NCBI GenBank assembly: GCA_964019335.1
Contig: OZ025750.1
Location: 248,001 to 312,000, forward strand
Source of the DNA: Diplonema japonicum
Lineage: Eukaryota > Protista > Euglenozoa: Diplonemea
Direction of reading: 5' to 3'
Length of the DNA stretch: 64,000 nt
Below, piece after piece: positions 2,921-64,000 of this stretch. Numbering within the stretch: the first letter of the stretch is position 1; each line of letters starts with the position of its first letter. The position numbers and the translations under genes are program-made. Under the pieces are notes generated by a model that ran no database searches, was not told the origin of the DNA, and worked only from the letters and a program-made list of their open reading frames with translations.

Positions 2921-5086
2921 ATGGAGAAGTACCCCCCTTTCCGTTGGGCCATGCGGCCTTGGGACACCCAGGAGGAAGTGTTTTACAAGAAGCTGGTTAC
3001 GGTGTGTGTACTATCGATATGCCTCGTCTTCCCGCTCGCCATCCTGCCCCGCATGAGCTCCAGTAACGTGTTGACACAGAGTACAGCCTACCCGTTTATA
3101 TTGACAGGATTGCTCATGTCCCCTGTTTTCGTTGATGGGGTATACAGGCCTTTGCTTGCTGAAGTCGGACTTTACTCGTTCTTGGTTAATGTGATTCTGG
3201 AGGACTATCTATTTACCCTTTTCCAGCAGAATGCCTACTGGCCTTGGGCTGTAATCATCATCGATGTTTGCCTTGTCCTTCGCTTGCCAAGCAGGGTAGC
3301 GAGGAACATCATCTGCTGCACCCTCATCTGGCTCACGTTACGCTACACTGAGACCGCCTTCCGCTTTGGCCTCTACGATGCATGGTACACACCTTCTCAG
3401 GGCGAGCGACGCGATATCTCTGATGATTTCAACAACTGCACCTCCCTTCCCTGCAAGAGGGACGTTTTGGTGTGCTTTTCCGACCTTGTCAACAACGGTC
3501 TTCTCTTCCTGCTTGACTTTTACTTCACAAGAGGCTTTGCTTCCAGCTTGAACAAAGAGAGGGACAAGATGGACAAGGTGATCAAAACAGCGGAGCACAT
3601 TGCCGACTCCCTCTCGAAGTTCGACCTCGCCCAGGCTGAGTCTGTCCTCAACACCTCTGAGCTCCCCGAGCCCATGCACGACGCCTTCAGCAGGATCCTC
3701 GACAACCTCCGCAGCTACCGCCCCTACCTCCCTGAGGCCCTGTTCTCGGAATTGACAATAACAAAAGAGTGCGAAGTCCCCGCCCCCGGCCTCATATCAC
3801 AGCGTGTGGCGATGGTGTTCACTGACATCCAGGGGTCGACGGCGACATGGGAGGCATGCCCCGATGGGATGAAGGAAGGGCTTCGGGTACACAACAAAGT
3901 AATGCGGGAGTGTGCTGTGGCTTGGAACGGGTACGAGGTGAAGACGATCGGGGACGCCTTCATGGTCGCCTTTGAGCACACCTGCGATGCTGTGTCCTTC
4001 TCCTTGTCTGTTCAGGAAAGCCTTGTTGAGGCAGTGTGGCCTGTGGGGCTTCTCCAGCTGGACCACTGTTCCTACAATGACGACGGCCCTTGGTGCGGGC
4101 TCCGTGTTCGGATCGGTGTCCACTGTGGTGAGGTGGATGCACAGCTGAACACCCTGACAGGTAGGTACGACTACTTCGGGAACACTGTGAACAAGGCGGC
4201 TCGGATGGAAGGGGCGTGCATCGGTGGGGCTGTTGCGGTGACACCTGAGGTGATGGAAGATCTTCAAGAAGGTGAATTGCTTTCAAAGCTAATTGTGATT
4301 TCAATGGGGCCAACGACACTAAAGGGAATAGAAGAGGTGATGGACCCAAAAGTACTGCTGCCCTCGACGCTAGAGGCCCGTACCGTCTTTGTCATGTCTC
4401 AGCTCCTTCTAAGCAAAGAGGACAGGAAGCTCGTAGTGACGGATGCATTAAGCATTAAGGGCAGCCTATCGAACAGCTCTCTGAGGTCATCTATACTAGT
4501 GCACAATTGCCTGAGGAAGGTGCTCTCGGCAACAGTGTGCAAGGCGGATATTGTTCTGCCTTTGGGGAATGGCCAGGAGGTAACTTCTTTGCTGAACGAG
4601 CTTCTTGCGAAAGTGACACTTTGTGTGGAGCGAACGCATGGTGTGGTGATCTCCCTCCAGGGGAGCAGGGTGGCCCTTGGGTGGAACGCCTCGCGACCCT
4701 GCCGTTCCCATGTGGAGAGCGCATTTGCCTTTTCAAGCATGCTTCGGCACTCTTACGGAGGTGACAGGAACCTTGTGCATCTAGGGTTGTCAGACAGTTT
4801 AGTTTTCCATGGCTCTGTGGGCAGTGATAGCTTGTTTGTAGCTGTTGTGGGGAGCTGTCTTGGGGTGAGCGATGCCCTGTGCACGATGGGGATGCAGAGG
4901 GGGCTGTACTGCTTGTATGGGTCGTCGACTGAGTATTCTGAAGCCTCTGGAGTGTCTCTTGAGCTTCTGGAACACAACTTGGACAGTAACACCAATGTGT
5001 ACATGGTGGCGACAGACGAAAGATGTGACAACACGAGATGGGCTAGTAGCCCCAGGAGAGCGAGGAGAAGCTTTGGCGACAACTGA
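2921..5086 (+). CDS. Multi-pass membrane class III adenylate cyclase (AC2)
   Basis: Likely ATG at 2921 after a T tract and catcag acceptor. About 5-6 hydrophobic N-terminal segments, a CxxLPC loop and FLLDFYFTRGF precede the full cyclase motif set and a degenerate second cyclase-like domain. Confidence 0.93.
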   Translation: MEKYPPFRWAMRPWDTQEEVFYKKLVTVCVLSICLVFPLAILPRMSSSNVLTQSTAYPFILTGLLMSPVFVDGVYRPLLAEVGLYSFLVNVILEDYLFTLFQQNAYWPWAVIIIDVCLVLRLPSRVARNIICCTLIWLTLRYTETAFRFGLYDAWYTPSQGERRDISDDFNNCTSLPCKRDVLVCFSDLVNNGLLFLLDFYFTRGFASSLNKERDKMDKVIKTAEHIADSLSKFDLAQAESVLNTSELPEPMHDAFSRILDNLRSYRPYLPEALFSELTITKECEVPAPGLISQRVAMVFTDIQGSTATWEACPDGMKEGLRVHNKVMRECAVAWNGYEVKTIGDAFMVAFEHTCDAVSFSLSVQESLVEAVWPVGLLQLDHCSYNDDGPWCGLRVRIGVHCGEVDAQLNTLTGRYDYFGNTVNKAARMEGACIGGAVAVTPEVMEDLQEGELLSKLIVISMGPTTLKGIEEVMDPKVLLPSTLEARTVFVMSQLLLSKEDRKLVVTDALSIKGSLSNSSLRSSILVHNCLRKVLSATVCKADIVLPLGNGQEVTSLLNELLAKVTLCVERTHGVVISLQGSRVALGWNASRPCRSHVESAFAFSSMLRHSYGGDRNLVHLGLSDSLVFHGSVGSDSLFVAVVGSCLGVSDALCTMGMQRGLYCLYGSSTEYSEASGVSLELLEHNLDSNTNVYMVATDERCDNTRWASSPRRARRSFGDN

Positions 5087-15005: not shown

Positions 15006-15505
15006 TATTTATTTTCTTTTTTCTTTTTTTTTTCTTCTCCCCCCCCCCAGCAAAAAGAAAGAACAATGAACAAAAAAATGAACTTGCTTGATTCGGGTTT
15101 CTTTTGCCTAACAAGTCCCAGGAACATGGGGTTTCTCCTTTTTAAAGAAAAAAGAAAATTCATCTTCTTTTTGTTCGTCGCTCTCCCCCCTTTTTTTCCG
15201 CGTTTTTTTAAAAAAAAGAAAACATGGTGTTTTATTGTAATAAAGATATAAAAGAAAATGCTGCTCCTGTTTTTTTTTTTTTTTTTTTCCCCCCTTTTTT
15301 TTCTCTTCTTTCTTTTTTTTTTTTTCCCGCGCACTTACCCATTAAAAGGAGAGTTTCTTCTTTTTTTTTTCTTTTTTTTTCTTCTCTCTCTCTTTCTCTC
15401 TCTCCCTCTTCCTTCTCTTTTTTTATTTCATTTTCCATAAATCTCGCAACAGCACCCCCAGCAAAGGCTCCCCCCCCCCCCCCCCCCCCCGGAGAAGAAG
15501 AAAAG

Positions 15506-18500
15506 ATGCCGTTAGCAGTTTTCGTGGTACTGTACGTGAGCGGGGCCGTCACAACTGGTACAGGCAGCAGTTTGATGTGCAACGTGATGAAGGCGTGGGT
15601 GCAAGGGTATGAACATGGAGATGTGATGTATGAGTGCGAAGGGAGCGGCGAGGGCAAGGCAGCCTTGCTGGCAGGCACCGTCGACTTTGCCGGAACAGAC
15701 TCCGAGTTCACGGAAGAAGAAACAAACAAGAACCCAGACCTACAGCTTGTCCCTGTCGTCGCCTCGTCCACCGCTATTGTATTCAACCTTCCAGGACAGG
15801 CATCTGTCACATTATCTCGCGACACGCTGTCGCTGATATTCTCGGGTGAGATGACAAGGTGGTCGGATCCCCGTCTTGTACATTTGAACCCATTCCTCCA
15901 TTTGCCCGACAGGGACATTGAGGTCGTGGTGCGGAATGATTCGTCCGGCAGCACCATGATCATGACCCGCGGGCTTGTTAGCTTCGGTTGGTCGGGAGGC
16001 GCGGCCACTTCAACATGGCCTCACCATTTGAGCTTCGCAACACGAATCCACGGTGGGCGTGATGTTCTCGCCTATGTCAGGCGGACCCCTTATACGGTGT
16101 CGTACAACAGTGCGTCAGATGCCCTCTCTCATCAGGTCGCGTTTGCAAGTGTGGTCAACAAGCTAGGGGTCAGTACCCTCCCAGGATGGGGTGATGGTTC
16201 TGATGCCGCGTCTGACTTCACAGTGGACCCTGTGACATTGGTGAGCCGTGCAATCGACGGGCGGGGGTACCCCTTGACAGGGTTGTCTTATATTGCGTTC
16301 AGACGGGCCCCCTCTGCCTCTACCGCCGCGACGTGTTCCCTTCTTGATTTTGTGTACTGGCTGTGCACGAGCCCCGTGGCGCAAAGTATCATAGTTTCCA
16401 GTTCGTTGACACCGCCGGGACATTCCACCACTAACAAAGCTCTGAGCAGTCTGCGTTCCTCGTGTGTGAACCCCCTGCCTGCGAAGCGTTTAGAACGTCC
16501 CATTCCCGTTTACACAAAGCCGCAGTTCGAAGAGACGCTGAATTCGATCGGTTTTATGTACCACAGCATCAGCAAGCTGCAGTACATCACCAAAGGCACG
16601 CCCGATGGAGCAAAGATGACCGTGGTTGTGAGCTTGACGCCCAGCACGGAGCAGGTAGCGATCCCTTTAGGAGTGGGTTTGTATGTAGTCGGGTGCAATC
16701 TAGGCATCAGTGCACCTTCGATTAAGCTCACGCTACAGACGATCAGTGACCTGTTCGTAAGGAAGATCGTCGACTGGAACCACGACTCCGTTCGAGACAT
16801 GAACAGCTATGTACCAACGGGAAGCCGGAAGGTGGTGCTAGTAGGCGAGAGTGGAACGCAGTGGGCATCGATCATGCTCGACGCACTGGGCACGGGTAAC
16901 TTTTCTCCAGACGTGACCCTCGATTCGGTCGTGGAAGTCTGGGCTTACATACGGCAAAACCCTGGAACCCTTGCAGTGCTCCCCTATGAGAATGTCAAGC
17001 AAAGAGACATCACACTGGTGCACCCCATCATGAGCGGTGTCCCCGTCGGTCCGTCACTGGAAAGCATTGGCGAAGCCATCACGCTTGATGTGTACAACGT
17101 CGGCTCTGGGGTTGCACGGCTCTCCCCATCACTGGCACGACTGTACCCTTTCTTCTATGTCGTCCACATTGTCGCTATGAAGAGCTTCTCAAGCGTACAG
17201 GAGTGTGAGTTCCTCTCATGGGCCAGTGGATATCCAAGCTCTGATAGTCATCTTGACAGGGCACTACAGAGCACCGGTCTTTACCCCATGAAGCGGGACG
17301 TCCTGCAAGCATTGCATGGGCAGTTGGTGGCGTGCAACGGAACTATACTGCTCCCTTCTCAAGAAGGTAGTTCGGACACCGGACTTGTCGGTGTGGGGTT
17401 TGGGCTTGCGGCGTTTGTTCTCGTGCTTCTTGTTGCGGCTTTGCTGAGGTGGCGAAAGATGCACGGCAGGTACAAGTCCCTGCACAGTGCGACGGCGCTT
17501 GCAACAGCGATGGTAGAGGCAGTGACGTTGCTTGACTTCTCGTCGCTCGAGAACTTTGACAACTTACAGAACCCCGACACGATACAAGAGGCCATGATCT
17601 TCATCATGACTGCGATGAAGGAGCTCCTGAGGTACATCCCGCACTACGTCATCATGAGCGTGAGATTGGAAGAAAGGCCGCGCACTGAGTACAGCCTAAG
17701 TAATTCCGTTCGAAGCATCCCCTCGCTGACCTCGAGGAGCAGGAACTCCCAGCAGGACGGCATCTGGAGCCTCAAGGAGAAGGCCGTGCGTGTCGTAACT
17801 GTTCTAACAGCAAGGCCGGTTTTAGTTGTTGTTGCGAAGCGTGATAGCACCATCGAGGACCTGCAGATGGAGTTCTTCTCGGCGATGATGTCCCTCATCG
17901 AACCCGATCCCTCTAGCATGTTGCATAGAATACACGAAGATAGCATGGTGGTTACATGGGGCAGCATAGGTGGTTATGTGAGCAAAACGAGAGTGGTGTA
18001 TCTTGCGGAGCAGCTCGTGAAGACCGGGACTGGCGTTTCCGGTATTTCTGTCGGCCAGGCATACTGCGGGTCAATAGGAACCCGAAGCGTTCAATCCTTC
18101 CAGGTTCTGGGCCTCCCCATCGATGACTCCAGTACCTTGGCCAGGATTGCTCAGATTAGCGGGGCAGGGTGTTTGTTGCCGTCTGACTATTTGGCAAGCA
18201 ATCCCACTTGCGTGTCGTACAAGTTCTTCTGCGTCTCAGCCGCTTCTAACGGGAAGCCTCTAACCGTTAGTATTTTGTTCACTGCGAAGGAACCTGACAC
18301 AAGTTGCGATTGGGCGAACACACCACAGGCGCAAGGACAGTCCGAAGGTCTACCGGCAGTATTCCGCTGTTTGCAAGAGCAGAATTATGGTTCGGTGAAT
18401 GAGCACATCTCTGCTGCGCTGTCTCGTCAGCGACCCGAGAGGCTTGCCACGTGGCTCAGCGAAGCCATTCCGGTACTACTCCCACTTCTTGAGGCTTCTC

Positions 18501-18622
18501 ATGAGGTAACTCTTGAGCCCGGAAGCTGCGGCAGCATCTATGTCAAGTCGGAAGGCGTCGTAGCGTCGCAGTCAGTTCGGTCTATGAAGGTATATCACGA
18601 CGGTGGCTCGGCATGGAGGTAG
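15506..18622 (+). CDS. Membrane receptor-like protein: two PstS/PBP2-like phosphate-binding-type domains, one TM helix, degenerate cyclase-like intracellular domain
   Basis: Signal-like MPLAVFVVLYVSG. PstS-type motifs GSGEG..GTVDFAGTD, IFSGEMTRWSDP, VVRNDSSGST and GYPLTGLSY. Second diverged copy LFVRKIVDWNH and LYPFFYVVH. TM segment LVGVGFGLAAFVLVLLVAALL. Tail with LLRYIP, VVTWG and GISVGQAYCGSIG but no FTD/GD catalytic residues. Confidence 0.8.
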   Translation: MPLAVFVVLYVSGAVTTGTGSSLMCNVMKAWVQGYEHGDVMYECEGSGEGKAALLAGTVDFAGTDSEFTEEETNKNPDLQLVPVVASSTAIVFNLPGQASVTLSRDTLSLIFSGEMTRWSDPRLVHLNPFLHLPDRDIEVVVRNDSSGSTMIMTRGLVSFGWSGGAATSTWPHHLSFATRIHGGRDVLAYVRRTPYTVSYNSASDALSHQVAFASVVNKLGVSTLPGWGDGSDAASDFTVDPVTLVSRAIDGRGYPLTGLSYIAFRRAPSASTAATCSLLDFVYWLCTSPVAQSIIVSSSLTPPGHSTTNKALSSLRSSCVNPLPAKRLERPIPVYTKPQFEETLNSIGFMYHSISKLQYITKGTPDGAKMTVVVSLTPSTEQVAIPLGVGLYVVGCNLGISAPSIKLTLQTISDLFVRKIVDWNHDSVRDMNSYVPTGSRKVVLVGESGTQWASIMLDALGTGNFSPDVTLDSVVEVWAYIRQNPGTLAVLPYENVKQRDITLVHPIMSGVPVGPSLESIGEAITLDVYNVGSGVARLSPSLARLYPFFYVVHIVAMKSFSSVQECEFLSWASGYPSSDSHLDRALQSTGLYPMKRDVLQALHGQLVACNGTILLPSQEGSSDTGLVGVGFGLAAFVLVLLVAALLRWRKMHGRYKSLHSATALATAMVEAVTLLDFSSLENFDNLQNPDTIQEAMIFIMTAMKELLRYIPHYVIMSVRLEERPRTEYSLSNSVRSIPSLTSRSRNSQQDGIWSLKEKAVRVVTVLTARPVLVVVAKRDSTIEDLQMEFFSAMMSLIEPDPSSMLHRIHEDSMVVTWGSIGGYVSKTRVVYLAEQLVKTGTGVSGISVGQAYCGSIGTRSVQSFQVLGLPIDDSSTLARIAQISGAGCLLPSDYLASNPTCVSYKFFCVSAASNGKPLTVSILFTAKEPDTSCDWANTPQAQGQSEGLPAVFRCLQEQNYGSVNEHISAALSRQRPERLATWLSEAIPVLLPLLEASHEVTLEPGSCGSIYVKSEGVVASQSVRSMKVYHDGGSAWR

Positions 18623-58479: not shown

Positions 58480-60438
58480 ATGAGCAGCATGGATAAGTAC
58501 AAACGCGGGGCGTCCATTGGAAGCGGTGGTTTCGGGAAGGTGTACAGCGTTGAGCGCATTGTGGACGGCGTGCAGTTAGCCATGAAGGAGCAGATCGCCT
58601 TCCACGAGGACGAGTCCAAGATGGAGGAGGTGCGCCACATGCTCGGGCTGGAACATAAGAACATCGTAAGCTGCGTCGACTTCTTCACCACCACCACCAC
58701 AACCACAACAGGGAAGACGAAGTGGACGCTGCACATTCTGATGCCGCTGTACAGCTGCGACCTCGACAAGCTCGTCAGGAACGAGGGGGGCATCGGGAAG
58801 CAAAGGTGTATTAAGCTTGTAGCAGAGTTAGGAGAGGCTCTATGCTTCCTACACAAGAGAGGCTTCATCCACAGGGACGTCAAACCGCCAAATGTCATGG
58901 TGTGCAGTCCCGGAGGCGATGTTGAGTTCGTGTTGGCCGACCTTGGGCTGTCAAAGGAAGCCCTCTGCACTAACAGCTACACCGGCACACCACACTACAT
59001 GGCCCCCGACATTTTAAGTCCTCCTTATACTAACAAGGTGGATCTATGGTCCCTCGGCGTCACGGCGTGCTTCGCTGTCTTCGGTGAGGACGACGGTGAA
59101 CTGATGCTAAGGCACCTGCATGGGAACTACGAGTTTGTAATAGAGAACGTGACGGAGTTGCTTGAGAAGAGCGTTGGTGCGCCGCTTGATGGTGTGCTGC
59201 TGAGACTGTTGTCAATGGAAGCGGATGACCGCCCTGCTGCAGAGGATATCCCGCTACTTTTGGGCGAGCGTGTGGTTCTCCTTGCGTGTGTAACCATCGG
59301 CGGGGACGAGAGAAAAAGGAAGATAGCTGTTTCGAAAGGTGCAGATGAGGACACGGTGCGTAAAGCTATCAGCCACGAGTTCAGAAACGTAGCGGGCATG
59401 GAAGAGATCAGCAGGCTGGAGATTCTGGACGAGGATTTCAACCAATTCGTAGATGTTGTCAAGGGAACGGAGTTCAAGGAGAAGAATACTGTTCGGGTTG
59501 TGTGTGCAGCTGTGTCCAGTTGCGATCCTCCGCACGTTGGCGGCACAAACACCACAACTAGCACAGTCCGTGAGGACCCCACAATGGATTTTACACCAAC
59601 TGACTCACTGCTCAATGTGCCTGTTCATGAAGGCACAGGTGTTTCAATGAAGTACATGAAGCACATACCTAACGTCACAGTGGATACGTCGCAAGTAACG
59701 TTCCGACAAGAGAAGAGCACGATCCTCTTCTGCAACGACGGGGACAGGGCCATTTCGTACAAGATTCTCGTTGCAGGCAAGAACAAAAACATATCAGTTA
59801 AACCACCTGAAGGCATCATAAACAGGCGCAGCGAGCACAAGGTCTTCTTACGGTACAAAGGCGAGTTTGGGGATATGAAGTTTCGGATCCTCGCCCGCGA
59901 GCTCGCCGACGGGAAGCACCAGATGGACCGCAGTCTGCACCTTGATGAGGATAAATTCGTGAATATAGATGTGGTGCGGCCTGTCTTGGTCACCGTAGCC
60001 CCTGACCCTCTCACCTTCGACGGGGAAGGAAGGTGCGACGCGGTCATAAGCAACAATAGCGACAAGTGGGTAGCTTACAAGTTAAGGATACTGACGAACC
60101 GCAAGTTCTGCAAGGTGCGGCCGACGATGGGGGTCTTGAGCAAAGGGGCTAAGACCAACGTCCAGTTTATTGCAAAGTCGGATCCCGAGGAGAGTGATGC
60201 ACTTCGCATTCTATCGAAGGAGCTAACAGAGGACCAGGCCGCGATGGACGACCAGGAACTTGCAAAGATATGGAAGGAATGCTCTTTCAGGCAGCAACAC
60301 TTGGGTGTTCGGCGCCTATGCGGGGAACAGACGGACATCGCGAGCCACTCAAAAGAAGCTCACGACCGAAGCGAGGCTGCTCACCAGGAACCATATGGCA
60401 CTACTCACAGCACTATCCCCGGAGCCACGCTCCGATGA
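58480..60438 (+). CDS. Ser/Thr protein kinase fused to two C-terminal MSP (major sperm protein/VAP-type) domains
   Basis: Kinase motifs GSGGFG, AMK, HRDVKPPN, DLG and GTPHYMAPD. Two MSP-like repeats: VTF..ILFCNDGDRAISYKI..VKPPEGII and LTF..ISNNSDKWVAYKL..VRPTMGVL. Confidence 0.82.
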   Translation: MSSMDKYKRGASIGSGGFGKVYSVERIVDGVQLAMKEQIAFHEDESKMEEVRHMLGLEHKNIVSCVDFFTTTTTTTTGKTKWTLHILMPLYSCDLDKLVRNEGGIGKQRCIKLVAELGEALCFLHKRGFIHRDVKPPNVMVCSPGGDVEFVLADLGLSKEALCTNSYTGTPHYMAPDILSPPYTNKVDLWSLGVTACFAVFGEDDGELMLRHLHGNYEFVIENVTELLEKSVGAPLDGVLLRLLSMEADDRPAAEDIPLLLGERVVLLACVTIGGDERKRKIAVSKGADEDTVRKAISHEFRNVAGMEEISRLEILDEDFNQFVDVVKGTEFKEKNTVRVVCAAVSSCDPPHVGGTNTTTSTVREDPTMDFTPTDSLLNVPVHEGTGVSMKYMKHIPNVTVDTSQVTFRQEKSTILFCNDGDRAISYKILVAGKNKNISVKPPEGIINRRSEHKVFLRYKGEFGDMKFRILARELADGKHQMDRSLHLDEDKFVNIDVVRPVLVTVAPDPLTFDGEGRCDAVISNNSDKWVAYKLRILTNRKFCKVRPTMGVLSKGAKTNVQFIAKSDPEESDALRILSKELTEDQAAMDDQELAKIWKECSFRQQHLGVRRLCGEQTDIASHSKEAHDRSEAAHQEPYGTTHSTIPGATLR

Positions 60439-60625
60439 TTTTTGAACGAAAGACTTTATAAAGAATAAACTTGCACTTCTCCCGCCTAAACACCGAAGAA
60501 TATTACCCATCGGTGGCAATAGGCGGGCGCTTTTTTTCTACTTTACTCTCTTGCTTCTAGTGTTTAATTAGTTTGACCTCAATAACTATCGGGGGCAATC
60601 ACTACATCAGGATTTGGCCAAAAGA

Positions 60626-63600
60626 ATGGATGTATCAGCACTGGTGGCAGTTGTGACATTTGTGTCATGCTGTGTAAGCAGTGGTGTGGTGCTGGGTCTG
60701 AGTCAAGGAGGCGTTCATGTGGGTATCAGTTCGTCCGCGGTACCCTTGCTGTCTATTCTCTGCACGGCGGCTGCTGTATTGGTGGTTAGAAAGTATCTTG
60801 TGGGGCCTTTGCGGTCGGCGAACAAGTTCCTTGCATTGCTTTCTCGCGGCGCGAGTGAAGCAGCCTTTGATGACCATGCAGTGTTTAAACATCTAGAAGA
60901 GACACGACACCTGCGCGACCTTCTCTTCTCCCTGCAGCATTCGATAAGGCCGGAAGAAGAACAAATACTCCCTGAGACATCTAACTCGAGCTTGAGGGAA
61001 CAGATCTTCACGCCTGTCGATGTTGAAATACCGAAGGGGAAGGTGACGTTTGTATTTACGGATATTGAAGCTTCTTCTGTGTTGTGGAAACAGCACCCTG
61101 ATGACATGAAGGCAGCTATGCGGCTGCACAACACTACGATACGGATTGTGTACTCGCGGTACCAAGGTTACGAGGTGAAGACCATTGGGGACGCCTTCAT
61201 GCTGACGTTTGACCAAGCAAACAATGCCGTGCGATTCGCGTGCGATGCGCAGCTAGAGCTGCTGAACTGTGACTGGCCCGAGAACATTCTCACCGACAAC
61301 CTCTGTGCGCCCATCACTCGTGCAGGGCAGCTTATCTACCGTGGAATGCGCGTCCGCATGGGCATGCACACCGGCGAGGTTGCCATGGAAATAGACCCCG
61401 TCAGTAATCGTGCTGACTACTTCGGCCACACAGTCAACACCGCAGCTCGTATCGAGTCCGCAGGTGCTGGTGGTTGCATCGTTTGCTCTTCTGTCGTGAT
61501 ACAGAACATCAACCCATCCATGCTGAGCTGCACCATCGTACCCCTCGGCACGATTGAGCTCAAGGGCGTCGGGCAGCGCACATTGCACGGTATCATCCCC
61601 ACTTCTATCAGTGAGCGAGGCGCTAGACTTTCCCGCAAGAAGGTTTCGTCAGGGAGTTCCTTAAGGGAGAACTCCATGAAGAGCCCAAGCTCCAACCACT
61701 TAAGTGTCTCGAAAGGTAAGTTCTACAAAATGCTGTTCAGAGATCTCTACAGCGACCGCTTGCAGTCCGACGGTCTGATACGATCGATCGTCGGCAGGTT
61801 CTTGTCGTCCGATGAGCTGCAACCGTTGAACGCGACTGTGGTTCAAATCCGCATCGGGGTAAACTTCAAGGAGCTCCACCACCTGCTGTCCACTGTAGGA
61901 ACGTTAGGAAGGAGAACGTTTGGTGTGATGCTGAACACAGCAACCACAACAGTGACGCTGGTGTGGATGTGCCAGGCTCACGCTGTCCAGGCGGTGAGCT
62001 TCGTCGCGTCTTTGTACTCGGAATTAGGATTAGGATCGGGCTCAAAGCTGCACGTAGGAATGGCCAGCGGTGGGGTTATGTTTGGGATCACAAGCCCCGG
62101 CGAGGAGAAGCACATCATAACATGCGTAGGAGCACCTGTCGATTTATCTTTTGCATTGGCAGAAGCTGCAGAGATGCTGGAAATGACATGTTTAGTACCT
62201 AGTACCATTGCGGCAGGAGTGCCATCGCTGACCAGGCTTCTCCGCCCTATTGACCGCTGGCCCTTTCACGGGGCCACCCAGACTTATGCCGAAGTCAATG
62301 AGCTGCACATCCCTGCGCTGGCCAACGCGGAGAAATGGGACATCCTGTATGGCATGTACGAGGACACCACATGGTGCGATGCGTCATACAGGGCTGCCTT
62401 CGACGATGTGCAGAACGGCGACCTCACTAAAATGAAAGAAATAGGAAAAAAGTGGCCTGACGATATGGTCGTTAGGAGGATCCTGCAGAATGACGGAGTG
62501 TGCCAGACCAGGGCCATCTACCTCCCTGGTCAGCACGTGGCAACTAGCTCTTCCAGTTCCAGCGATAAAGAGAACATGGAAGAGGCATGGAAGCGTGCGA
62601 CGGCGGCATCAAAGTCGTCACGCACAGAGATGGTGTTCATGGAAGGGTGGGCGTACGACGTGTCAGCCTTCATGCACACTCATCCGGGAGGGATGGAGAT
62701 ACTAAGGGAGCACCTGGGGAAGGATATCTCAGATTTGTTCAGGGGCCACGGCGAGGGAAGGGTTCACGACCACAGCGCGTACGCTGCAGATGTACTGCGC
62801 ACCTTACGAGTCTTCAGAACGGACAACCTTGCGACGAACGAGTCCAACATGATGATCGTGCGCGACACATGGCAGCAGCTCCAGTCCGTCGGGCTGAAGG
62901 AGATAGGTGTGTTGCTCTTCAAAAACCTGTTCGAGATGCACCCGGAGTACCTACAGCTATTCCCATGGGGAAGCACAAACGGCGTATACGAGTCACAAGT
63001 ATTGGCGGAGCACGGGCTTCAGGTGATGACCGCTGTGAACAAAGCTGTGACGGACTTGTCAAATTCTCACGAGGTGGCGCATATCCTGCACGAGCTTGGA
63101 AGGACGCACATCAGGTACGGGATATCGAAGCACATGTTCGACGTGGTTGGCATTGCGTTTGACGTAACGTTACGAGCTGCGCTGCAAGAGAGGTACACAC
63201 CACAGGTGCGCCATGCGTGGGGTGAAACCATTCGTCACATCATGCTGATGGCGAAGGATGGTGTTGCGGACACACACGAGGAGAGCGAGTCTGCGGTTGC
63301 GGCCGATGAGTACCGCTCGTTGTATTACAAAAGGCGCGAGGCACGCACGCACAACACAACGCTGTTCGTGTTCCATCTCAATGGGGTCTCTTCGCAGTAC
63401 TTCGCACCGGGTTCGCACGTCAGCGTCCGCTTTAATGGAAAGCTCTCCCGGCCGTACTCCATCTTGAACGTGCGCAACGACGAGATCTGGCTCCTGATCA
63501 AGCTGAACCACGGCAGGCAGAGCTCAAAGGAGCTGAACAGTTTGACAACCGACTCTCTTGTAGGGATCCGCGGTCCGCTTCTCGCGGAGCACCAGTATGT

Positions 63601-64000
63601 AAAGGGGCAGGATTTGCTTCTAGTTGGCGGCGCGACGGGATGCGTTCCGCTTCTGTCATTGGCAAGGGCAGCGTTGAAGGATGGGGGAAGGGTGTGGTTT
63701 ATCGCATGCTGCGACACCTACGGTGACGTGGCCTTCAAGCCTGAGCTGGAAGAGTTCAGGGAGCTTGGGGGTGAGTTGAATGTCAAGTTCTTCTTAACGA
63801 AGGGAAGATCCGCACCCGAGGGAGTTGATCCCATTTTCGCCCCTATCCTCCTCAGTGATCACGTACAAGGCTTCTTCCCCCCTGTCTCGCAAGACAACCA
63901 TGTTGTTATCTGTGGTTCTCCTATTTTTAACACCAACGTCCGTGCTGTTGTCCTAAGCAGTGGCTACACGTTCACAGTTATGGGATCCTTGTCAGGCAAT
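60626..64000 (+). CDS. Adenylate cyclase / cytochrome b5 / globin / FAD-NAD(P)H reductase fusion protein, 3'-truncated by the window edge; absent from the ORF track
   Basis: Manual translation from ATG 60626 is open for 1125 codons to 64000. Order: two hydrophobic N-terminal segments; cyclase (VFTDIE, YEVKTIGDAFM, DYFGHTVNTAARIE); degenerate cyclase; b5 (YDVSAFMHTHPGG..GKDISDLF..HS); globin (LFEMHPEYLQLF, EHGLQV, LGRTHIRYGI, AW); FNR module (PGSHV, RPYS, IRGP, GGATGCVP, ICGSP). Confidence 0.92.
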   Translation, partial: MDVSALVAVVTFVSCCVSSGVVLGLSQGGVHVGISSSAVPLLSILCTAAAVLVVRKYLVGPLRSANKFLALLSRGASEAAFDDHAVFKHLEETRHLRDLLFSLQHSIRPEEEQILPETSNSSLREQIFTPVDVEIPKGKVTFVFTDIEASSVLWKQHPDDMKAAMRLHNTTIRIVYSRYQGYEVKTIGDAFMLTFDQANNAVRFACDAQLELLNCDWPENILTDNLCAPITRAGQLIYRGMRVRMGMHTGEVAMEIDPVSNRADYFGHTVNTAARIESAGAGGCIVCSSVVIQNINPSMLSCTIVPLGTIELKGVGQRTLHGIIPTSISERGARLSRKKVSSGSSLRENSMKSPSSNHLSVSKGKFYKMLFRDLYSDRLQSDGLIRSIVGRFLSSDELQPLNATVVQIRIGVNFKELHHLLSTVGTLGRRTFGVMLNTATTTVTLVWMCQAHAVQAVSFVASLYSELGLGSGSKLHVGMASGGVMFGITSPGEEKHIITCVGAPVDLSFALAEAAEMLEMTCLVPSTIAAGVPSLTRLLRPIDRWPFHGATQTYAEVNELHIPALANAEKWDILYGMYEDTTWCDASYRAAFDDVQNGDLTKMKEIGKKWPDDMVVRRILQNDGVCQTRAIYLPGQHVATSSSSSSDKENMEEAWKRATAASKSSRTEMVFMEGWAYDVSAFMHTHPGGMEILREHLGKDISDLFRGHGEGRVHDHSAYAADVLRTLRVFRTDNLATNESNMMIVRDTWQQLQSVGLKEIGVLLFKNLFEMHPEYLQLFPWGSTNGVYESQVLAEHGLQVMTAVNKAVTDLSNSHEVAHILHELGRTHIRYGISKHMFDVVGIAFDVTLRAALQERYTPQVRHAWGETIRHIMLMAKDGVADTHEESESAVAADEYRSLYYKRREARTHNTTLFVFHLNGVSSQYFAPGSHVSVRFNGKLSRPYSILNVRNDEIWLLIKLNHGRQSSKELNSLTTDSLVGIRGPLLAEHQYVKGQDLLLVGGATGCVPLLSLARAALKDGGRVWFIACCDTYGDVAFKPELEEFRELGGELNVKFFLTKGRSAPEGVDPIFAPILLSDHVQGFFPPVSQDNHVVICGSPIFNTNVRAVVLSSGYTFTVMGSLSGN

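Follow-up and report, generated by a model that had tools for sequence, protein, structure and literature searches.

On the forward strand of the 64,000-nt window that we analyzed from the Diplonema japonicum genome (assembly GCA_964019335.1, contig OZ025750.1, positions 248,001 to 312,000), positions 60626-64000 form a single open frame beginning at ATG 60626. This frame runs off the window and was for that reason absent from the list of its open reading frames. In the genome, on the contig that we refer to as C103, the frame continues for 27 more codons (G000:C103:312001-312084), ending 81 nt past the window edge with a stop at window-equivalent 64084, to give a protein of 1152 aa, of which aa 1-1125 are encoded in the window. 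Upstream of the start codon, a pyrimidine-rich tract followed by AG (60530-60570) is a plausible spliced-leader acceptor as inferred from euglenozoan trans-splicing rules, and no ATG lies between it and 60626. Pfam analysis identified Guanylate_cyc (aa 137-319), Cyt-b5 (aa 670-718), Globin (aa 764-872), FAD_binding_6 (aa 904-985), and NAD_binding_1 (aa 999-1105), all above their curated gathering cutoffs. These findings confirmed in every detail the observation of an earlier note, which had described a fusion of an adenylate cyclase, a cytochrome b5, a globin, and a flavin reductase at this locus and had placed the redox motifs at exact coordinates.

The N terminus (60626-60811, aa ~1-62) contains two hydrophobic (transmembrane) segments at aa ~1-27 and ~32-62, with Kyte-Doolittle hydropathy of >1.6 over 19-residue windows, that form a hairpin with a ~12-residue loop and no ectodomain, a pattern conserved in the family alignment. 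A poorly conserved linker (60812-61006, aa 63-127) separates this anchor from a class III cyclase homology domain (61007-61615, aa 128-330; PF00211, 95 bits against a cutoff of 21.9), which matches the Trypanosoma brucei cyclases GRESAG4.3 and GRESAG4.1 (E=2e-31 and 7e-31, respectively). The residues expected for catalysis and ATP specificity, as assigned by the motifs FTDIE, KTIGD, DYFG, and NxAAR by analogy with mammalian and mycobacterial cyclases, are complete, with metal-binding D146 and D189, adenine-specifying K185 and D264, transition-state N271 and R275, and K313, and are invariant in 11 paralogues. This domain is predicted to be active.

The earlier note had also proposed a pseudo-cyclase downstream of this domain, which our analyses show to be a second, degenerate (catalytically dead) cyclase homology domain (61808-62320, aa ~395-565). 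Alignment of the middle region against the active cyclase domain with hhalign gave no signal (probability 0.9%), but those alignments were shallow (Neff ~3). In contrast, a profile of aa 331-660 hit class III cyclases in the PDB, including ADCY10 (E=3.5e-6) and photoactivated cyclases, and its AlphaFold model matched CyaC, CyaB, OaPAC, and Rv1625c by Foldseek (E~1e-9, prob 1.0, TM 0.62-0.69). The metal Asp, Asn, and Arg positions are substituted. A small helical region follows (62321-62590, aa 566-655; AF2 helices with pLDDT 80-90) that is shared with all cyclases of this genome's family.

The remainder of the protein comprises the redox module. The cytochrome b5 domain (62591-62830, aa 656-735; PF00173, 38.7 bits against 23.7) contains haem ligands H686 in HPGG (nt 62681) and H716 in HDHS, and both are invariant in 10 sequences from four species. 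A b5-globin connector (62831-62869, aa 736-748; TDNLATNESNMMI), 100% identical in three paralogues, leads into a 3/3 globin (62870-63280, aa 749-885; PF00042, 59 bits) with F765 (B10), F779 (CD1), H796 (E7), V800 (E11), and H828 (F8), as numbered by comparison with myoglobin. H828, H796, F779, and F765 are conserved in Diplonema members. The best PDB hits of this globin were class-1 phytoglobin (E=8e-12) and neuroglobin (E=1e-9). The FAD-binding domain (63326-63595, aa 901-990) carries RPYS (aa 942-945, nt 63449) and GRQSS (aa 963-967), and the NAD(P)H-binding domain (63596-64000, aa 991-1125 within the window) carries GGATGCVP (aa 1001-1008, nt 63626) and CG (aa 1096-1097, nt 63911), so that all four b5-reductase/FNR motifs, RxY(S/T), GxxS, GGxGxxP, and CG, are present. 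The best solved match of the reductase was the Physarum NADH-b5 reductase (2eix, E=2e-14), and Foldseek gave TM 0.80 and rmsd 2.9 A. The AF2 model of the whole redox module had good domains but a pTM of 0.52, and we drew no conclusion from it on haem-haem or FAD-haem distances.

Conservation and transcription of the fusion

We next investigated whether the fusion is maintained in D. japonicum and related species. The genome contains five full-architecture paralogues plus one without the reductase, and relatives occur in D. ambulator, D. papillatum, and Sulcionema. A tree built without the redox module supports a single origin of the fusion (99/98), which has been kept since before the Diplonema/Sulcionema split. 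pN was 0.12-0.17 in every folded domain against saturated synonymous sites, whereas linkers reached 0.3-0.4, indicating strong purifying selection. The C6/Sulcionema subfamily (C6 being a D. japonicum paralogue) keeps the cyclase, b5, and globin but has lost or degraded the reductase.

Transcript data further support the fusion as a single mRNA. D. japonicum transcript P0002 is 100% identical over all 1163 aa to one paralogue, C37a, and full-length D. ambulator and Sulcionema transcripts and a D. papillatum gene model exist. A second D. japonicum transcript, P0005, has an odd 5' end that might have suggested internal trans-splicing, but this end is the same DNA read in another frame due to a T6/T7 homopolymer difference. 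We found no RNA run or transcript for the C103 copy itself, as a search of sequencing runs yielded only DNA-like data and a search with the redox module yielded only P0005, which derives from the sister paralogue. C103 evolves 3.5x faster than its sister, C104, most of all in the globin, although every ligand is kept.

All nine PF00042 hits in this genome lie in multidomain proteins. Six are these cyclases, two are globin-PH-protein kinases, and one has two globins plus b5 without a cyclase, so that eight of nine carry a cyclase or protein kinase. No stand-alone flavohaemoglobin was seen in the genome. These findings favor a sensor role. Two other analyses were less informative. After a first alignment proved too diverse, a metagenome scan gave only generic FNR proteins at 26-30% identity. 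In the ESM Atlas, all scores were <0.9 and no cluster had b5, globin, and FNR together, although the nearest clusters, which we regard only as leads, include "nitric oxide dioxygenase."

Comparison with known globin and redox systems

The fusion was not found described in the papers that we searched. However, the protein is not absent from databases, as the D. papillatum homologue is in NCBI simply as "Adenylate cyclase." The earlier note had also described the reductase as b5-reductase/flavohaemoglobin-type. By sequence, the reductase is of the cytochrome-b5-reductase type and the globin is of the phytoglobin/neuroglobin type, and no flavohaemoglobin chain appeared among phmmer hits for either domain at E<=0.01.

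In Leishmania HemAC-Lm and the trypanosomatid oxygen-sensing adenylate cyclases (OACs), a globin and a trypanosomatid-type class III cyclase domain likewise sit in one euglenozoan protein, and O2 binding to the haem is reported to control cAMP (PMC7719234). OACs are soluble, with an N-terminal globin and a C-terminal cyclase, and have no b5 or reductase. In the D. japonicum protein, the order is reversed, the protein is membrane-anchored, and a dead second cyclase domain, b5, and b5 reductase are present. Because OACs were reported as a trypanosomatid innovation absent from Bodo (PMC7719234), the diplonemid protein is probably an independent fusion. Flavohaemoglobins (Hmp/Yhb1, NO dioxygenase) share the linear order globin-FAD-NAD(P)H and the logic of a globin with its own reductase, and Foldseek's best hits (6o0a and 1gvh) cover both parts. 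The modelled packing differs, however (rmsd ~13 A), the globin has Phe-B10/His-E7 rather than Tyr-B10/Gln-E7, and an extra b5 and a cyclase output are present.

The raphidophyte nitrate reductase NR2-2/2HbN has an identical b5-globin-FAD/NADH subarchitecture, with a globin inserted between b5 and its reductase (PMC6128913, PMC3820574), but its globin is a 2/2 truncated haemoglobin and its N-terminal partner is a molybdenum nitrate-reducing domain, an enzyme rather than a signalling output. The cytochrome b5/NADH-cytochrome b5 reductase system that reduces haemoglobin and cytoglobin, and natural b5-b5R fusions such as Ncb5or and the euglenozoan b5-b5-b5R proteins, contain the same two redox domains and motifs. 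The latter euglenozoan proteins are the nearest nonfamily relatives. In those systems, the globin is a separate protein or is absent, whereas here it is built in at the position of the second b5. In bacterial globin-coupled sensors (HemAT, DgcO/DosC, and AfGcHK), a haem-globin input also controls a second-messenger or kinase output, but their globins belong to the sensor (S) family, are N-terminal, and depend on cellular reductants (PMC7475203). The D. japonicum globin has plant class-1 and animal (neuroglobin) globins as its nearest solved relatives, is C-terminal to the cyclase, and has its own reductase chain.

A candidate haem-based sensor with cAMP as its output

Although function is inferred and no biochemical data exist, we favor with moderate confidence a model in which this protein is a membrane-anchored, intracellular haem-based gas/redox sensor with cAMP as its output. 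We infer that NAD(P)H reduces FAD, FAD reduces the b5 haem, and b5 reduces the globin haem. This is the established methaemoglobin/cytoglobin reduction chain, here built into one polypeptide, so that the sensor globin would return to the ferrous state after autoxidation or after reacting with NO. Consistent with this, b5/b5 reductase/NADH efficiently reduces cytoglobin, and b5 supports its NO dioxygenase activity (PMC7475203, PMC3820574). Because flavohaemoglobin has the same globin-FAD-NAD order, direct FAD-to-globin transfer with b5 as a side branch is not excluded. The state of the globin (ferrous bis-His, O2 bound, or ferric) may set a conformation that passes through the invariant b5-globin connector and the dead cyclase/helical region to the active cyclase domain. 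Since the latter carries all catalytic residues itself, we infer that it must pair with the same domain of a second chain to form active sites, as pairing with the dead domain would give no complete site. We take O2 as the primary signal, with hypoxia reported as a change in cAMP and NO and NADH supply as modulating inputs. However, the globin lies far from the cyclase, unlike in known globin-coupled sensors, and bis-His-type globins usually have very high O2 affinity, which suits NO dioxygenation better than graded O2 sensing. D. papillatum changes shape and growth under hypoxia, and diplonemids occur in oxygen-minimum zones (PMC8611851). A five-to-six-member family of such sensors may explain how they sense hypoxia, and D. 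papillatum has a homologue and is genetically tractable.

Haem-based gas sensors all face the problem that the ferrous haem oxidises and the sensor goes blind, and how they are re-reduced in cells is mostly unknown. With the whole chain in the same polypeptide as the globin and a second-messenger output, electron supply, ligand binding, and signalling can be studied in a single recombinant protein. The role and true reductase of hexacoordinate globins such as neuroglobin and class-1 phytoglobins have long been debated, and a conserved natural fusion of a globin that resembles these by sequence to b5, b5 reductase, and a cyclase is direct genomic evidence for both a partner and a signalling role. 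A broader and more doubtful possibility is that diplonemids use animal/plant-type globins as general intracellular sensor modules; seven of the nine Globin-model hits in D. japonicum are accompanied by cytochrome b5. The cyclase fusions would then be three-input devices (O2, NO, and NAD(P)H) whose b5/b5-reductase chain resets the haem, a eukaryotic counterpart of bacterial globin-coupled sensors and a natural "Rosetta stone" showing that b5/b5 reductase is the physiological partner, and signalling the physiological role, of neuroglobin-like hexacoordinate globins.

A less likely alternative is an NO sensor built on a complete NO dioxygenase, in which the oxy-globin converts NO to nitrate and becomes ferric, the b5/b5-reductase chain re-reduces it, and the steady-state ferric fraction, or nitrosyl haem under hypoxia, gates the cyclase so that cAMP reports NO or nitrosative load rather than O2. 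The phytoglobin and neuroglobin similarity, the requirement of Hb-NODs for a flavin reductase and the support of the cytoglobin NOD by b5 (PMC3820574), the metabolism of NO by NR2-2/2HbN (PMC3820574, PMC6128913), the Atlas leads, and the fact that no stand-alone flavohaemoglobin was seen in the genome are in line with this idea. In contrast, the protein lacks the Tyr-B10/Gln-E7 pair of high-turnover flavohaemoglobins, five paralogues with a signalling output are more than detoxification needs, and nothing is known about NO exposure in Diplonema.

We consider two further possibilities unlikely. In the first, the cyclase reads the reduction level of FAD/b5 as a metabolic redox (NAD(P)H/NAD(P)+) or electron-flux sensor, with the globin mainly as a terminal oxidase-like electron sink and cAMP reporting the balance between reducing power and O2. 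The complete, conserved NAD(P)H-to-haem chain, the relationship of the reductase to euglenozoan b5-b5-b5R fusions, which are metabolic electron carriers, and the globin-b5 protein without a cyclase support this reading. However, the loss or degradation of the reductase in the C6/Sulcionema subfamily indicates that the haem domains, not NAD(P)H binding, are the conserved core. In the second, slightly less probable still, the redox module is an enzyme or electron donor, for example for membrane desaturases or detoxification, merely tethered to a membrane cyclase for colocalisation or coexpression. The poorly conserved link regions between domains and the lack of confident interdomain packing in the AF2 model would be consistent with this, but the long retention of the fusion in up to five paralogues per genome, the invariant b5-globin connector, and the systematic fusion of globins to signalling domains in this genome argue against it.

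Finally, an assembly chimera, a read-through of two genes, or a decaying duplicate is largely refuted, since short-read contigs from three independent studies tile the gene at even depth without a mismatch (although breaking at only two ~25-nt words shared with paralogues), the architecture recurs in four other loci and three other species with full-length transcripts, pN is far below pS, and the excess changes in C103, although it is the faster-evolving duplicate without a detected transcript, are mostly conservative, with more unique changes in other family members. Likewise, an apparent break in another paralogue, C37b, is a 34-nt GT..AG intron rather than a sign of a pseudogene.

The open reading frame and its locus

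Translation of positions 60626-64000 gave 1125 codons without a stop. Because the frame runs off the window, it was omitted when ORFs within the window were listed. In the genome, the frame continues for 27 codons to a stop, giving a 1152-aa protein. Pfam detected five domains, all above their curated cut-offs: Guanylate_cyc (aa 137-319, 95 bits), Cyt-b5 (aa 670-718), Globin (aa 764-872), FAD_binding_6 (aa 904-985), and NAD_binding_1 (aa 999-1105). The motif positions given in the earlier note were exact, with HPGG at 62681, RPYS at 63449, GGATG at 63626, and CG at 63911. Two hydrophobic segments at aa ~1-27 and ~32-62 form an N-terminal hairpin with a 12-residue loop, so that the protein has no ectodomain. 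Near the other end, beyond the window, aa 1126-1152 and the otherwise divergent tails of D. japonicum, D. ambulator, and D. papillatum members contain a short conserved motif, L-x-[L/I]-P-G, which may be a targeting or modification signal.

The genome contains 62.5 Mb in 132 contigs, a size matching the published D. japonicum YPF1604 assembly (PMC13598402), and all long ORFs in the window lie on one strand. A pyrimidine-rich tract followed by AG (60530-60570) precedes the first ATG of the gene, as expected for a spliced-leader acceptor, although this function is inferred. The upstream neighbor (58480-60438, + strand) encodes a protein kinase with a C-terminal MSP (major sperm protein) domain. 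Elsewhere in the window (15224-18622, + strand), a 1132-aa protein has a PstS-like PBP_like_2 domain, and Pfam detected no cyclase domain in it at E<0.001. Contigs of ten sequencing runs from three studies contained the gene. Those aligned to the gene tiled it with no mismatch and at even depth, and they broke only at two ~25-nt words shared with paralogues, in the YEVKTIGDAFM and NLATNESNMM coding stretches. Short stretches of the 3' flank just downstream of the gene and beyond the window (L006:6216-6767, in an extracted stretch of this locus) had very high contig depth in all runs, up to ~100x the depth of the gene, which points to dispersed repeats in the intergenic region.

A family of fused cyclases in diplonemids

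We found that D. japonicum has five loci with the full architecture, named here by contig: C103 (the copy studied here), C104 (71% identical), C37a (59%), C49 (53%), and C37b. A sixth locus, C6 (915 aa), has cyclase, b5, and globin domains but no reductase. C37a is 100% identical over 1163 aa to the EukProt protein EP01064_Diplonema_japonicum_P004910. C37b appeared to be broken, but its two frames are separated by a 34-nt GT..AG intron inside the globin H helix (about positions 4100-4135 on the reverse strand of L011, the stretch G000:C37:18377-23986), with exon ends reading ...YTPQ | VRYAW..., as in the family. The other paralogues are intronless there. Homologues outside D. japonicum included three in D. 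ambulator (P0001, P0003, and P0004) and one in D. papillatum (P0118, which is NCBI KAJ9472313.1 and is named only "Adenylate cyclase"), whose globin region is aligned but falls below the Pfam threshold. Others were one in Sulcionema specki (P0159), with degenerate globin and reductase, and probably one on an unnamed ENA contig, split into P0006 + P0127. These transcripts show that the cyclase and redox module are on one mRNA. The deviant first 11 residues of another transcript, P0005, are the C104 gene read in another frame because of a T6/T7 homopolymer difference and do not reflect an internal splice.

To examine the origin of the fusion, we built a maximum-likelihood tree on aa 128-655 only, without the redox module. 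All b5-bearing cyclases fell in one clade (99/98) among the plain cyclases of the genome, within which a subfamily with the full architecture (100/100) is sister to C6 + Sulcionema (92/87). The fusion therefore arose once, before these genera split.

Between C103 and C104, synonymous sites are saturated (pS 0.62-0.86 across the domains), whereas pN is 0.12-0.17 in each folded domain and 0.3-0.4 in the linkers. The 13-residue connector between b5 and globin (62831-62869) is identical in protein in three paralogues, and between C103 and C104 it is also nearly identical in DNA (pS 0.125 against ~0.8 elsewhere). Although it rests on only 13 codons, this similarity suggests gene conversion or a nucleotide-level constraint. 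C103 is the faster-evolving duplicate, with 137 lineage-specific changes against 39 in C104 when D. ambulator P0001 was used as the outgroup (p=1.5e-13). In the globin, the counts are 24 and 3, respectively. However, the changes are mostly conservative, no ligand is lost, and C49 and P0004 carry more unique changes. These findings fit divergence after duplication rather than decay.

Cyclase and redox domains

The best solved relatives of the cyclase domain are the T. brucei receptor-type cyclases GRESAG4.3/4.1 (E=2e-31). D146 and D189 (metals), K185 and D264 (adenine specificity), N271 and R275 (transition state), and K313 are all present and invariant in 11 paralogues. A profile of aa 331-660 hit human soluble cyclase ADCY10 (3.5e-6) and photoactivated cyclases (1e-4), and the AF2 model of this region (pLDDT 75-90 in the core) matched CyaC, CyaB, OaPAC, and Rv1625c with a Foldseek probability of 1.0 and TM of 0.62-0.69. 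The metal Asp, Asn, and Arg positions are replaced in this second cyclase domain (61808-62320), indicating that it is a dead domain. The domain is shared by at least 34 other cyclase loci of this genome (e.g., C21:193747-223687, C50:411559-429974, and C37:444294-456781). The whole large cyclase family of this genome carries an active cyclase domain followed by a catalytically dead second cyclase domain and a small helical region, and many members lie in tandem arrays. In class III cyclases, each active site takes the Asp pair from one domain and the Lys/Asp/Asn/Arg from the partner. Since an active:dead pair would therefore have no complete site, we infer that activity should require two active domains from two chains.

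Both axial His residues of the b5 domain (H686 in HPGG and H716 in HDHS) are invariant in ten sequences of four species. The globin residue set is Phe-B10, Phe-CD1, His-E7, Val-E11, and His-F8. Its best solved relatives are class-1 phytoglobins (8e-12) and neuroglobin (1e-9), and no flavohaemoglobin chain appeared in this search. The best match of the reductase is Physarum NADH-cytochrome b5 reductase (2e-14), with all four motifs present and a Foldseek TM of 0.80 and rmsd of 2.9 A. The AF2 model of the whole redox module has good domains but a pTM of only 0.52, leaving the packing unresolved. Flavohaemoglobins are the top Foldseek hits to this model because the order globin-FAD-NAD is the same, but they superpose at only ~13 A.

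Distribution of the architecture and possible function

A HMMER search of 1.84 billion representatives with the redox module as the query found the triple b5-globin-reductase only in this family. Other top hits were multi-globin concatemers (sea urchin, dinoflagellate, and metagenomes) and euglenozoan b5-b5-b5R fusions from Namystynia, D. ambulator, and Rhabdomonas, the latter suggesting that a globin replaced the second b5. A word-based search with the cut-out module found only the transcript of the sister paralogue, and the nearest Atlas clusters are either b5+FNR (nitrate reductase) or globin+FNR (NO dioxygenase), never all three. The family is present in public data but, as far as the searchable literature shows, undescribed. 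The trypanosomatid cyclase survey describes only OACs in which the globin precedes the cyclase, and these are absent from Bodo (PMC7719234). The D. papillatum genome and metabolism papers mention no cyclase, globin, or b5. The raphidophyte NR2-2/2HbN (b5 - 2/2 globin - FAD) and the reduction of cytoglobin by b5/b5 reductase are established (PMC6128913, PMC3820574, PMC7475203).

The Pfam Globin model hit nine places in the D. japonicum genome, six of which are these cyclases. Two others are globin-coupled protein kinases: a Globin - PH - CAP-Gly - Ser/Thr kinase of 777 aa (G000:C113:40338-40523, - strand; ORF L024:1149-3479:-) and a Globin - PH - kinase in a 474-aa ORF whose kinase domain is cut short, perhaps by an intron (G000:C52:493955-494122, + strand; ORF L025:2740-4161:+). 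Eukaryotic globin-kinase fusions of this kind may themselves be undescribed. The ninth hit is a 1026-aa protein with two globin stretches and a C-terminal b5 (G000:C115:27701-27991, + strand; ORF L026:2905-5982:+), a second and cyclase-free association of globin with b5 in this genome. No single-domain globin or stand-alone flavohaemoglobin was seen with this model. Globins in this genome are systematically attached to signaling outputs, and b5 accompanies globins in two independent architectures. Furthermore, D. papillatum rounds up and slows under hypoxia, and diplonemids occur in oxygen-minimum zones (PMC8611851).

The earlier note had proposed a fusion of adenylate cyclase, cytochrome b5, globin, and flavin reductase acting as a candidate self-recharging O2/NO sensor that makes cAMP. 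Our analyses confirm the fusion and support the interpretation as far as sequence can go. The reading we favor, which we consider about as likely as not, is an intracellular haem sensor whose globin is kept in or reset to the ferrous state by NAD(P)H through FAD and b5 and whose ligation/oxidation state controls dimerization-dependent cAMP synthesis, with O2 as the main signal. An NO sensor based on NO dioxygenase activity is possible but less likely, a sensor of NAD(P)H or electron flux is doubtful, and a tethered enzyme without allostery is slightly less likely still. An artefact or dead gene is very unlikely. Although it represents one lineage only, the C6/Sulcionema subfamily has lost or degraded the reductase and has lost the distal His, which shows that b5 plus globin is the conserved core and hints that the reductase and hexacoordination go together.
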